This document shows, piece by piece, positions 23,452-43,200 of a stretch of DNA of 64,000 bases (its first letter is position 1; every line of letters begins with the position of its first letter). The stretch is from sequence record MZ622713.1, one strand, 5' to 3'. The translations under genes were made by a program, and so were the position numbers. The notes under the pieces were generated by a model. That model saw nothing but the letters and a program-made list of their open reading frames with translations. It searched no databases and had not been told where the DNA came from.

Positions 23452-23459
23452 ATTTTAGA

Positions 23460-23477
23460 TCTATATTACCTGAGTGT
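23460..23477 (+). promoter_or_regulatory. Putative phage (virion RNAP) early promoter
   Basis: TCTATATTACCTGAGTGT; contains the TATATTAC core described for phiKZ early promoters; the motif recurs six times, always intergenic. Confidence 0.7.
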
Positions 23478-29133: not shown

Positions 29134-29169
29134 TAAGTTCCTCTGTGCCATCGGGTGCAGAGGAACTTA
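29134..29169 (+). terminator. Terminator hairpin
   Basis: TAAGTTCCTCTGTGCC-ATCG-GGTGCAGAGGAACTTA followed by a T-rich tract. Confidence 0.75.
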
Positions 29170-29245
29170 ATTTAAATTATTTTTTAACTGCAATTGACAT
29201 CTCTTTGGGGAGGGGGAGAAAGAGATTAATTAAGATAACTATTTA

Positions 29246-29269
29246 TTATTTTGTATATATACAAAATAA
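29246..29269. promoter_or_regulatory. Perfect 24-bp palindrome, candidate operator
   Basis: TTATTTTGTATATATACAAAATAA, about 20 bp upstream of the promoter motif of the AraC-like gene. Confidence 0.45.
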
Positions 29270-29289
29270 GATGTTTAATATAAAACAAA

Positions 29290-29307
29290 CCTATATAACC
29301 TAGATGT
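29290..29307 (+). promoter_or_regulatory. Putative early promoter (variant)
   Basis: CCTATATAACCTAGATGT, preceded by TAAAACAA like the copy at 33560. Confidence 0.5.
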
Positions 29308-29345
29308 ACTCCTTGACATAATAAACCTTTACTAAGGAAAGAGAC

Positions 29346-30308
29346 ATGAATACAAAAGTAGTTTCAAAGCCAACTAAACAAGATCTTGTAATGTGGGATA
29401 AAGTCACTAAATTCGTTAGTGGTAAACTAAGAAAAATCACTATCCCTGAAATCATGGAAGATGTAGATATTGGTAAACGTGAACTTGAAAGACTTTTTAA
29501 GAAGGTGGTTAAGAAACCAATAGGTGAATGGTTGGTGGGTGCTAGACTACGAGCAGTGACCTCATTCCTAAGAAACCCTAATTGTGATTTTGACCAACTA
29601 CATACGCTTATGGGTATGGAACAAGACAACAGCTTAACCACGTACTTACGTAAGCATTTTAACATCACTTACGGAATGGCGAAACAATTGCATGGCCGTG
29701 GTCGACTGTCAACCTACATAAACACCTTCCATAAACACAAATGCATCGAGTCCTTTTACGCAGAGGAAATGATCAAAGAGATTGAGAAACGCAAAGGTAA
29801 GATCAAGTCTACCGAACTCAAAGCTTTGTTCGATATCTCGGCTGCACACTTCTACCGCATCTGGAACGAGTACAACGGTCCAGAAACACTCCACGAGTAC
29901 GCTAGCTTTATCGAGATCAAATGTTTGCGAGAAGAGTTCCTAGAGGCTGATAACACGCCATTGGCTTTCTTAAGTGAACGTGGGATTGCGGTCCATCGAG
30001 TGGATAGTTTCCATGTTAAACACTATGGTGAAACTTTCCGTAGTTGGGGTGGTAAGAAGATCAAAGGTAAACCTCGTCACCGTGTAAATGGAAAGGAAGA
30101 GATATTAGGCAAACATTGGTTGAATGTAATCAGAGTGAATCTACAAAGCTCTGATACTCGCATCGAGGAACTTGCAGCTAAAATCAATATTACCGACATC
30201 TCTATCCGTAAAGTAATCACCCACTACGCAGGGATGACTTATTTGGAATACAAAAACTCCATCTTAAACAGTCGTCACTCAAATTTAACTGTCAGGTCCC
30301 ATGTATGA
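29346..30308 (+). CDS. AraC/XylS-type DNA-binding protein with repeated HTH domains
   Basis: ITIPEIMEDVDIGKRELERLFKKVVKKPIGEWLVGARL...LMGMEQDNSLTTYLRKHFNIT fits the AraC domain pattern; two further degenerate copies follow. Confidence 0.65.
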   Translation: MNTKVVSKPTKQDLVMWDKVTKFVSGKLRKITIPEIMEDVDIGKRELERLFKKVVKKPIGEWLVGARLRAVTSFLRNPNCDFDQLHTLMGMEQDNSLTTYLRKHFNITYGMAKQLHGRGRLSTYINTFHKHKCIESFYAEEMIKEIEKRKGKIKSTELKALFDISAAHFYRIWNEYNGPETLHEYASFIEIKCLREEFLEADNTPLAFLSERGIAVHRVDSFHVKHYGETFRSWGGKKIKGKPRHRVNGKEEILGKHWLNVIRVNLQSSDTRIEELAAKINITDISIRKVITHYAGMTYLEYKNSILNSRHSNLTVRSHV

Positions 30309-33548: not shown

Positions 33549-33559
33549 AATAAAACAAC

Positions 33560-33577
33560 TCTATATTACTTGGGTGT
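33560..33577 (+). promoter_or_regulatory. Putative early promoter
   Basis: TCTATATTACTTGGGTGT upstream of the chaperonin gene. Confidence 0.7.
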
Positions 33578-40207: not shown

Positions 40208-43200
40208 ATGAAACACATTCGACAAATCCTGTTAGACAAAACGGCACTGATTCGTATCAGTTACGCTGAGTCTAAAGGTGACCCGGCGGAAATAGCATTA
40301 GCTAAAGCCCGCTTTGAAGGTCTAACGGACGATGAAGTCCAGTTCCTAAGTATCAACGAACGTTACACAGGTGCTGGAACTTATATCGGCGAAATCAAAA
40401 TCACGGGACGTGATGGGTTTGAGTTTAAGCAGGAGTGGTCACCGGGTGATACGGTACCTATGCTTAGCACTAAAGAGCGCATCAAAGTCCCTACTTTGGA
40501 AGTATTCCGCAATATCGTTATTCCGGGACTATATTACGTCGAAGACATCGCAGAACTATGTCTGGTCGTGAAAGACTCAATGACTATCCCTGACATTCAA
40601 CGTTTACTAGGTTTTGAATTTGACCCGGGTGAACTTGAAGTTCGCTTAAGTCATCTAAGGGTTCAGTCTCCTTTTGTAGATGGAACACTTCCTCTTAAAA
40701 CAGTAACTCCTAATCCTGACGGCACTATGACTGACGGTACAGGTATTACGGTAACAGACTCATCTATTGCTGGTAACATTTTGCCTGCTAACCCTTACGC
40801 TCCTACACAGTACATTACGGTGGAACGTGTGGGTTCAGAGCCAGTGTTCTCCGCAGAAATCGATAAAGCGTTTAAAGCTGAATTCGTAGGTAGCTACCGC
40901 CAAGGTGAAATCATCGAAGGCAGCCTAGCAGAAGACAACACATTCAGTGTTGATCTAGATGTTAAGAACCAATTGACTGACGACCTTCAATTATTAGTGT
41001 CGGTAGGTCTAGACCGCGATAAACTCACAGACGTTTACTCGGTGTCGTACATCGATGAACATTGGGCTATCGGCGAGTACACCACGGAAGTGGATTTAAC
41101 TCGTGTTGGTCAACCTTTCCGTATTGCTGGTTCAGTAAGTGGTGATTTCGGTCAAACGCCTTGGGGTAATGAATTACTTAATCCTAAGATCATTGTTGAA
41201 GAAATCGGTCAAGAACCTGTTGAGATACCTTTCAACGTGGATGGTACGTTTGACGTACGACACACACCAGTTGTTGCAGGTGAGATGACGGTTAAGTTTG
41301 TTTGTGGTCTACCACAAGACTTGAACGTGTTCTCTGAAACTCACCAGATCTTAGCCGCCCTTGCTGTGGATGATTTAATCCTAGGTCCTTTGTCAGCAGA
41401 CAAAACCGAAGTGGGTGCAGACGAACTGGTTACACTCACTAGTTCTTTGAAGTCAGCAGACGGACTAACGCTGACTGACGCTCCTGTGGACTTCTTGGTT
41501 GACGATCAAGTATTAACTCAGTTGTTTGCCAACCCAGAAGGTGTTTTACAACATATCTACGATGTAGAGAACGACACCACAGACCCAGTGACTTACGCAG
41601 TTAAACTTCGCTTAGGCGCGGAAGAGACCAACGTAATCACTATCACGGTTCAACCTTCTGATCAAATCCCGGGTCGCTTCGAGATTCTGGTTAATGAGGG
41701 TGAGTTGTTCAAGCCGGGTGAACTACGCTTTAAGATCTATGATACTGTAGATCGTCTGATGGTGGGAACCTCAGGTACTTGGTTCCGTGAGAACGGTGCA
41801 CCTAAAGCTTACGTGGTAGATGGTGAAGAATACGTTGCTCAACTAGATTCTCCTATCGATGTGGAAAACACCGTAGTGGAATCGATCACATTGAAATGTC
41901 AATCACTAGAAACTCCAGTAGACTTTACTTGGAATCTAGTGCGTCGTTTTGATGAAGTGTTCTTGGAACCTACTAACCCTACCGAAGGTGTGACGGATGC
42001 ATCCATCACTCTAAGTGGTAAAACGTTAGACCAGACCGATCAACCTATCGCTAACATTCCGTTGGTATTTAAAGATGATGGTTTGAAGGTATCTGATATC
42101 AGCTCTAACGACCAAGGTGTGTTTAGTGTTAGCGTGACTGCTACTGACGAAGCAGAACACCTATATTCTTTCGTAGGGGAGAATGACATCGGTGCTTCTA
42201 TCGCAGTACAGTGGACTAAGAACCACATCATGAGTTCATTGGAACTGACCAGTTCTACGTCGGTTACGTTGTTCACAGATGAGACTTTTGAAATCATCGG
42301 TAAACTGCTTGACCAGTACAATGAAAACATGGCTGGTGAAACAGTTACGTTGGAATACCCTGACGCTCATACCGTGGACCAACAAACCACAGCAGACGGC
42401 TTCAATTTCGTAGCAGCTTACCGTGACAACGGTTCTTTGAACCACACGTTAACTGTTAAGTCTGGTGAGCTATCCGCTGACGTTAATGTGACTTGGGAAA
42501 CGAAGAGTGACCCTATCATCGCTAACCTAACGGTAGTGCCTAACACTGTAGACATCGGTGAGCAATACACAGTAACTGGTGAGATTCAAGTTAACTACCC
42601 GTACGACTGGTCAACGACTCGCGTAGCTGTAACGAATGATGCAGGCGACGTAGTTAATGTGACGTGTGCGGCAGACGGTAGCTTCTCTTACACAGGTACT
42701 GCGGTTGCTCAAGGTAACTTTACACTACGTGCTGATGCAGTGGATGTGGTTACTCCAGAAGAAACGATCGTGCTTACGGTACGTGAACCTCGTGTAGCGA
42801 CTACTATCAACGTAGCTAACCTACCTGATAGCGCTAGCGTTTGGGACGGCCAAACCGCAGTGATCACTGGTACTATTCTGGACCAACATGGTGCTGTGAT
42901 TGATGTGCCGGTTACGGCTGATCTAGAGGGTACTCCGTTGACCAACACTTCTGAGGTAGCAGGTGAATTCGAGTTCTCTGCAACTTACGTTGGTGTAGGT
43001 ACCGCGGTTATGACCATCAATGCTGGCGAAGTGTCTCGTGAAATCACCATTACTTGGAAAGAAATCACTTACGACATCACTAGCATCAAGTACAGTCCTG
43101 AAGGTGTAGTACAAGGTCAGCCATTTACTTTCCAAGGTAAACTAGTATCTGCGGGCGGTGGTGATGTCGCGAACAAAGACATCGACCTAGTGTTGACTTC

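Follow-up and report, generated by a model that had tools for sequence, protein, structure and literature searches.

A Vibrio jumbo-phage protein built of two and a half AraC/XylS-type DNA-binding units, without a sensor domain

Vibrio phage phiKT1019 (MZ622713.1; 238,840 bp), a jumbo phage of the Chimalliviridae for which a phage nucleus has been seen by microscopy (PMC10587174), encodes a 320-amino-acid (aa) protein that almost certainly consists of two complete AraC/XylS-type DNA-binding domains followed by an extra first-half helix-turn-helix (HTH), with no sensor domain. Its gene lies in a 64,000-nucleotide (nt) part of that record, referred to here as the window (record position = window position + 62000), as an open reading frame (ORF) whose coordinates the initial annotation of this DNA had given exactly; it corresponds to the coding sequence UPT53916.1, with the GenBank product name "hypothetical protein". 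The protein, hereafter the 2.5-unit protein, is basic overall (isoelectric point 9.64) and carries five HTH motifs in one chain with a unit period of ~123 aa. Its parts are as follows (window positions):

29346..30308, + strand: coding sequence P0001 (ORF call), 320 aa, 2.5-unit AraC/XylS-type array
29373..29699, + strand: unit D1, aa 10-118, complete seven-helix AraC/MarA-type double HTH (HTH_18, PDB profile matches, AlphaFold2); helices at aa 11-24, 33-40, 44-54, 59-76, 82-88, 94-105 and 109-117 of the AlphaFold2 model
29706..29726, + strand: linker helix, aa 121-127, between D1 and D2 (AlphaFold2 secondary structure)
29745..30065, + strand: unit D2, aa 134-240, second complete seven-helix double HTH (hhalign, structure search)
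30075..30104, + strand: beta-hairpin, aa 244-253, in the basic D2-D3 linker (AlphaFold2, alignments)
30114..30302, + strand: unit D3, aa 257-319, half unit made of a first HTH plus a long fourth helix (hhalign, phrog_7620, structure matches)

As judged by direct sequence search alone, the chain contains one AraC-type domain, i.e., D1. This unit matches the Pfam model HTH_18 (PF12833) at aa 40-108 with 29.3 bits, below the cut-off of 33.6; the model is matched by 6/6 orthologues (best E 2.1e-11), with D1 of the Aphrodite1 and pTD1 orthologues scoring above the cut-off (44.1 and 38.4 bits, respectively). When the family profile was compared with the PDB, MarA, SoxS, AdpA, XylR and similar proteins were matched at positions ~11-115 only, and phmmer gave the same picture. 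Pfam returned no match for the D2 and D3 fragments, and no NCBIfam model was found to span two units, the matches instead aligning single units to the DNA-binding ends of classical regulators. By sequence, D2 and D3 are thus tied to the AraC family only via profile-profile alignment to D1. In this self-alignment (hhalign on a 10-member family alignment, with 60 column shuffles as the control), aa 10-118 aligned with aa 132-240 over 95 columns in exact register (probability 96.7 %, E 4.6e-10), for a score of 56.9 versus 11.0 +/- 1.7 (maximum 15.9) in the shuffles, a z of about 28. The first HTH of D1 also aligned with aa 271-306 (E 4.3e-6; score 33.5 versus 10.0 +/- 2.2 shuffled), and a shallower family alignment yielded the same D1-D2 and D1-D3 homology in weaker form. 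The C-terminal fragment corresponding to D3 alone matches phrog_7620 at positions 552-598, where the alignment of D1 to that profile also begins.

The same architecture emerges at the level of structure. An AlphaFold2 (AF2) model of the full chain, built from seven sequences (mean predicted local distance difference test score, pLDDT, 87.0; predicted template-modelling score, pTM, 0.69), comprises a seven-helix unit at 11-117, a helix at 121-127, a second seven-helix unit at 134-238, a hairpin at 244-253 and, at 257-319, a half unit of four helices. Modelling aa 127-320 separately gave the same layout (mean pLDDT 87.6). D1 superposes on the MarA/DNA complex 1bl0 (Z 7.2, root-mean-square deviation [rmsd] 3.1 Å, 109 residues), as well as on XylR and SoxS. 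In an unbiased search of the 127-320 model against 48,161 PDB chains, the top 14 matches were all AraC-family DNA-binding domains (Z 7.0-9.6), every one of them at aa ~131-242, i.e., D2, and covering ~100 of ~105-112 residues; the next matches were generic single HTHs. D2 also keeps the family Y/F-G-x-T/S signature at the end of helix 6. D3 resembles the lone AraC-type HTH in the DNA-bound structure of N-Ada (1u8b; Z 6.7, rmsd 2.8 Å, 61 residues), as well as TetR-type HTH heads (Z 6.5-6.8) and RpiR heads. D1 and D2 thus each display the seven-helix fold of an AraC/XylS domain, and D3 its first half only. Pfam and the AF2 model revealed no domain other than these HTH units, the three units and two short linkers covering the chain, and none of the 48,161 solved chains matched across more than one unit. 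Similarity to sigma factors was considered and rejected, the Foldseek hits having template-modelling scores <= 0.23 and rmsd > 20 Å. The D2-D3 linker is of the K-G-x-P-R-R-R type in Aphroditevirus, with a linker net charge of +0 to +3 across the family. At the far C terminus (aa 318-320; 30297-30305) there is a conserved S/T-Y/H-V tail, SHV here and SYV or YYV in most relatives, which is disordered (low pLDDT) in the model and may be a docking or degradation signal.

Full-length relatives are few and confined to one group of phages. The 2.5-unit protein matches phrog_27247 over its whole length (E 3e-61; aa 14-320 on profile positions 20-326 of 327), a Gorgonvirinae family labelled "unknown function". 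A HMMER search over 1.84 billion cluster representatives returned nine proteins, seven of which are full-length relatives of 314-342 aa, all from Gorgonvirinae-type jumbo phages; the matches to the other two, ordinary AraC or MarA-sized proteins, are confined to D1. Word-index protein searches gave near-identical copies only. In IMG/VR, a single-sequence scan found no match and an alignment-based scan recovered only phage genomes that were already known; the ESM Atlas yielded ordinary AraC clusters, with no large cluster matching across more than one unit. Literature searches on tandem or duplicated AraC domains turned up no description of this 2.5-unit gene. Where synonymous divergence (dS) is unsaturated, the ratio of nonsynonymous to synonymous divergence (omega) is 0.07-0.14, indicating purifying selection, and nonsynonymous divergence (dN) is lowest in D2 (0.12-0.16, versus 0.27-0.46 for D1); D2 is the most conserved and constrained unit. 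Separately, a ~400-bp patch of the orthologous locus, spanning promoter-proximal DNA and D1, is 100 % identical between phages 2 TSL-2019 and PDCC-1 against a background of 70-90 %, and this identity stops at the D1/D2 border; the pattern suggests a recent recombination event in which a single DNA-binding unit was exchanged along with the DNA upstream of it.

These data largely uphold the architecture read from the letters alone in the initial annotation. Its description of ~2.5 tandem AraC domains is borne out by the AF2 model, the structure searches and the self-alignment scored against shuffles. The "full AraC-pattern double HTH" placed at aa ~25-105 is D1, with its HTH_18 match and its MarA/SoxS profile matches, and the "half third" is D3, given its alignment to the first HTH of D1 and its resemblance to the N-Ada HTH. 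A second domain exists as described, but its supposed degeneracy does not hold, as D2 is complete, with seven helices and the lowest dN. The claimed lack of a sensor domain stands, the residues outside the units amounting to the short helix 121-127 and the hairpin 244-253. Structure prediction, suggested as a check, returned HTH units, and the suggested hidden Markov model search recovered HTH_18 at D1, albeit below the cut-off, leaving D2 and D3 unmatched.

The initial annotation was less accurate in its view of how unusual such a protein is. AraC-type proteins, which it took to be typically bacterial, also occur in phages, as in PHROGs 7620 and 11275 and several phage entries in BFVD; the latter database also revealed further AraC-type proteins in pTD1. 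Moreover, it considered the multiplied form unusual in a jumbo phage. A whole-record HTH_18 scan of phiKT1019 nonetheless detected three overlapping genes encoding proteins of 385, 239 and 232 aa with 3, 2 and 2 HTH_18 domains, respectively:

Record 211898-214459 (outside the window, ~120 kb from the 2.5-unit gene): 3+2+2 operon UPT54022-54024

The same 3+2+2 arrangement is present in Aphrodite1 and pTD1, and its proteins are found at full length only in Gorgonvirinae. As in the 2.5-unit protein, each chain is built only of AraC-type units with the same ~120-124-aa period (unit starts at 10/134/257 in the 2.5-unit protein versus 7/124/245, 4/126 and 2/124 in the operon proteins). Identity between units of all four array proteins is 6-24 %, with no sub-grouping, and tblastn with the 2.5-unit protein found no paralogue at E <= 1. 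There are also differences: the operon proteins score above Pfam cut-offs and carry regulator annotations, whereas the 2.5-unit protein is sub-threshold and "hypothetical"; in addition, the 2.5-unit gene is monocistronic, has its own promoter-like motif and ends in a half unit. With this operon in the same phages, the 2.5-unit gene becomes one instance of a phage-group theme. It is a fourth, cryptic and previously unrecognised AraC-array member in Gorgonvirinae rather than a singular oddity. The GenBank product names within the operon ("lactose operon transcriptional activator", "Msm operon regulatory protein") mislead, having been transferred from bacterial regulators that do carry a sensor.

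Comparison with characterized systems places the 2.5-unit protein outside the established classes. Unlike classical AraC/XylS regulators (AraC, XylS, RhaS, ToxT), it has no N-terminal ligand-binding/dimerisation domain. It resembles Escherichia coli MarA and SoxS in having the seven-helix double-HTH fold without a sensor or dimerisation domain; D1 aligns to 1bl0 and to 7w5w_J, and D2 to the same chains with Z 8.8-9.1. The activity of MarA/SoxS is presumably set by abundance, and the same is proposed here. However, those proteins are single domains of ~110-130 aa that read ~20 bp and work with the host sigma70 RNA polymerase (RNAP), whereas the 2.5-unit protein is a phage-encoded chain of 2.5 units and 320 aa, is at best 12-18 % identical to them, and belongs to a phage that uses its own non-canonical RNAPs. 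Rob (1d5y) has a comparable MarA-type N-terminal DNA-binding domain (Z 5.1-5.5); it differs in having a C-terminal GyrI-like sensor domain and only a single DNA-binding domain. In the Rob crystal, only one of the two HTHs inserts into the groove, and units in the AraC family thus need not all engage DNA. The best match to D3 is the DNA-bound HTH sub-domain of N-Ada (1u8b/1wpk), which, being resolved on DNA, indicates that one such sub-domain can sit on DNA; in N-Ada it follows a zinc methyl-acceptor domain, whereas D3 follows two full units and a basic hairpin. In eukaryotic Myb R1R2R3 and paired-domain proteins, several HTHs per chain read consecutive major grooves, lengthening the site and raising specificity; their sequences are unrelated to that of the 2.5-unit protein and their HTH sub-type is different. 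The 2.5-unit protein is thus neither a classical AraC/XylS regulator nor a MarA/SoxS-type single domain, and belongs with the Gorgonvirinae AraC arrays; by analogy, it would work most like a multiplied MarA/SoxS. As such, it would represent an unusual natural case of lengthening a DNA site by concatenating a bacterial activator domain. This significance is tempered by the domain type being well known and by the confinement of the family to one phage subfamily.

What sets the 2.5-unit gene apart from the other arrays is the DNA element next to it, which is highly conserved, present in two copies and of matching length. It lies in a 218-bp upstream gap that is much better conserved than the protein, with non-coding blocks invariant among phages whose proteins are only 20-39 % identical. 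The gap and the second copy of the element contain the following:

29134..29169, + strand: terminator-like hairpin after the upstream 160-aa gene (16-pair stem, T-rich tail)
29176..29218, + strand: composite element "site B", box ATTATTTTTTAACTG, 16 nt, G-tract GGGGAGGGGGAG, between the hairpin and the promoter-like motif
29246..29269, + strand: perfect 24-bp AT-rich palindrome TTATTTTGTATA / TATACAAAATAA, which repeats the TTATTTT box
29287..29300, + strand: promoter-like motif AAACCTATATAACC, perfect copy, 45 nt before the ATG
29334..29338, + strand: Shine-Dalgarno sequence AAGGA, 7 nt before the ATG, conserved in orthologues
Record 41881-41924 (outside the window): second copy of the element, "site A", upstream of a gene for a 290-aa phrog_27923 protein

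The consensus of the element is a box, ATTATTTTyTwACTG, followed after 16 nt by a GGGGnAGGGGG tract, with a conserved core of ~43-50 bp. This box-plus-G-tract arrangement occurs exactly twice in the 239-kb genome, at site B, ~125 nt upstream of the start codon of the 2.5-unit gene, and at site A, ~49 kb away. The same two sites, 48-50 kb apart, are found in Aphrodite1, 2 TSL-2019, PDCC-1, VP4B and phiKT1028, such that the element is present exactly twice per genome in 6/6 genomes examined; site B is also found upstream of the distant metagenomic homologues. The exact 24-bp palindrome is specific to phiKT1019. We consider the composite element a candidate operator, special promoter or leader, or R-loop-type origin. 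Three other readings of its parts were rejected: (i) the G-tract as a general promoter part, as the exact tract is unique with one near-copy; (ii) the site A AT block as a common promoter, as it occurs once; and (iii) a conserved hairpin around the G-tract, as this is present in phiKT1019 only and not in relatives. The G-tract of site A is flanked by the arms of a 15-nt inverted repeat (region record ~41875-42040), and the leader that follows contains two hairpins with a compensatory change, GTATGTA/TACATAC in phiKT1019 being replaced by GTATATAC/GTATATAC in 2 TSL-2019; this stretch may be either a small RNA preceding the phrog_27923 gene or its structured 5' leader.

The motif AAAYCTATATWAYC, of which the copy downstream of site B is perfect, has 14 copies genome-wide at <=1 mismatch, all on the + strand, and 13/14 of these are intergenic, 8-85 nt before an ORF. 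Its extended consensus of ~30 nt reads TAAATATTTTC / core / TAGGTG, i.e., an AT/T-rich upstream tract and a conserved -10-like core; further copies in the window are at 23457-23470 and 33557-33570 (2 mismatches). In RNAP-encoding jumbo phages, the sole motif accessible to bioinformatic detection corresponds to early, virion-RNAP promoters, and in phiKZ the early motif consists of an extended -10 preceded by a T-rich tract (PMC7598289, PMC8244752). The fit of the present motif to published phiKZ-type early promoters supports, short of proof, an early gene; it is thus a candidate early (virion-RNAP) promoter, from which early expression of the 2.5-unit gene is plausible, though the motif may instead be of the phiKZ middle type (TACT after an A-run). 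No sigma70-type promoter was found upstream of the gene, Rfam gave nothing credible on the upstream gap, and a search of RNA sequencing runs found none that contains the locus.

Taken with its fold, this setting makes it likely that the 2.5-unit protein is a DNA-binding regulator. Our main reading, to which we assign a probability of roughly 0.55, is that it is an abundance-controlled, long-site DNA-binding regulator of phage genes, possibly autoregulatory via site B. The interpretation in the initial annotation, a MarA/SoxS-like activator or long-footprint DNA binder that redirects host or phage transcription early, is supported in part. The protein would be made from its own early-type phage promoter within a replication/repair block and would act as a monomeric, sequence-specific binder of double-stranded DNA. 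As for MarA and SoxS, its activity would depend on how much of it is present rather than on a ligand. A single MarA domain covers ~20 bp (1bl0 complex), so 2.5 units would read about 50 bp, and up to five heads placed in successive major grooves would cover a long asymmetric site of ~40-55 bp. As the conserved core of the composite element is ~2.5 times the length of a MarA site and the element is adjacent to the gene, we propose it as the target, an assignment we hold tentatively and consider doubtful for now; binding at site B would afford autoregulation, and binding at site A would afford control of the phrog_27923 gene.

Several observations weigh against this proposal. The only ties between the protein and the element are their adjacency and matching length. 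Within the element, the G-tract by itself is not rare (6 sites versus ~4 expected), and the box also adjoins two ordinary copies of the promoter motif. Across the family, net charge ranges from -4 to +7 for D2 and from -1 to +5 for D3; as these units are not uniformly basic, not every unit may need to contact DNA. At exposed positions, the recognition helices of D1 differ from one orthologue to another. Lastly, the inter-domain geometry is moderately defined, as reflected in the pTM of the AF2 model, and the BFVD orthologue superposes at an rmsd of 8.1 Å.

An alternative target, raised in the initial annotation alongside phage transcription, would be the host. Here, the 2.5-unit protein would remain cytoplasmic and bind host promoters, or pre-recruit the host sigma70 RNAP, so as to reprogram or shut off host transcription early. 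The closest structural and sequence relatives of D1 are indeed MarA, SoxS and Rob-type activators that use host RNAP, the gene has an early-type promoter motif, and the phage nucleus imports selectively (PMC10299810), such that a non-imported protein would meet host DNA only. Against this, nucleus-forming phages transcribe without host RNAP (PMC7598289, PMC8244752), leaving no obvious gain from host promoters, and the strongly conserved non-coding element is on phage DNA, beside the gene. Though it fares best among the alternatives, we thus judge host-directed action to be improbable. In phiKT1019, the Pfam RNAP beta model found no match, such subunits being very divergent.

A role in replication or genome organisation is less likely still. 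In this scenario, the box, G-tract and AT palindrome would form a transcript-primed (R-loop type) origin or other cis site that is marked by the protein. The make-up of the region, with its AT-rich box, its G-rich tract and the perfect 24-bp AT palindrome, would suit such a site, as would the occurrence of the element twice per genome at conserved positions. The gene itself sits between NAD-ligase and RNase HI in a replication/repair block, and genes for initiators frequently neighbour the origins at which they act. The MarA-type protein Rob was originally isolated through its binding to oriC, and runs of G stabilise the R-loops that serve as primers in ColE1 and at mitochondrial CSB II. However, the GC skew shows no inflection at the site (its cumulative minimum is near window 10-12 kb), both elements lie directly upstream of genes in a leader- or promoter-like position, and we know of no AraC-type replication initiator.

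Equally unpromising is an adaptor in which only D1 binds DNA and D2 and D3 are HTH-shaped protein-interaction modules (for example, for docking onto a phage RNAP, the three AraC-array paralogues or an import factor), which would account for D2 being better conserved than D1 or D3 although its charge is near neutral or acidic in several members, for its invariant aromatics (F162, W173, Y227, W234) and for a conserved low-pLDDT S/T-Y/H-V tail typical of a docking peptide, but which sits poorly with the superposition of D2 over its full length on DNA-bound AraC domains and with its retention of the helix 6 signature.

Returning to the long-site regulator of phage genes, its wider interest lies in the transcription of these phages. 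The RNAPs of nucleus-forming jumbo phages have no sigma-like specificity factors for most promoters and no known sequence-specific regulators, and the middle and late promoter specificity of phiKZ-type RNA polymerases is unexplained (PMC7598289). Gene timing in nucleus-forming jumbo phages is poorly understood, and four sensor-less AraC arrays maintained under selection are concrete candidates for a part in it. A bolder extension, which we offer as speculation with the odds well against it, is that the four Gorgonvirinae arrays (3, 2, 2 and 2.5 units; 19 HTH motifs) form a transcription-factor layer inside the phage nucleus, together with the phage's non-canonical multisubunit RNAPs. Each array would read a long composite site, and the 2.5-unit protein would read the two-copy element and control its own gene and the phrog_27923 operon. 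If so, phiKZ-type RNA polymerases would have their first described system of sequence-specific transcription factors.

With respect to the surrounding genes, the order in relatives of known context is NAD-ligase, three small genes, the 2.5-unit gene, RNase HI, Acb1-like and Cpn60. The 2.5-unit gene is always just upstream of RNase HI, in six genomes (Aphroditevirus, Tidunavirus) and two metagenomic contigs. A small ORF within the upstream gap (29145-29303; 52 aa, GTG start) was rejected, as it runs across the conserved non-coding blocks and relatives do not retain it. In the terminator-like hairpin, each relative has its own stem sequence, yet the pairing is preserved in all, and this suggests that intrinsic-type terminators function for the phage RNA polymerases. 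Finally, a one-mismatch copy of the promoter-like motif is present at 30181-30194, inside the coding part of D3 and 139 nt before the RNase HI start codon, where it could be either an internal RNase HI promoter or a chance match.

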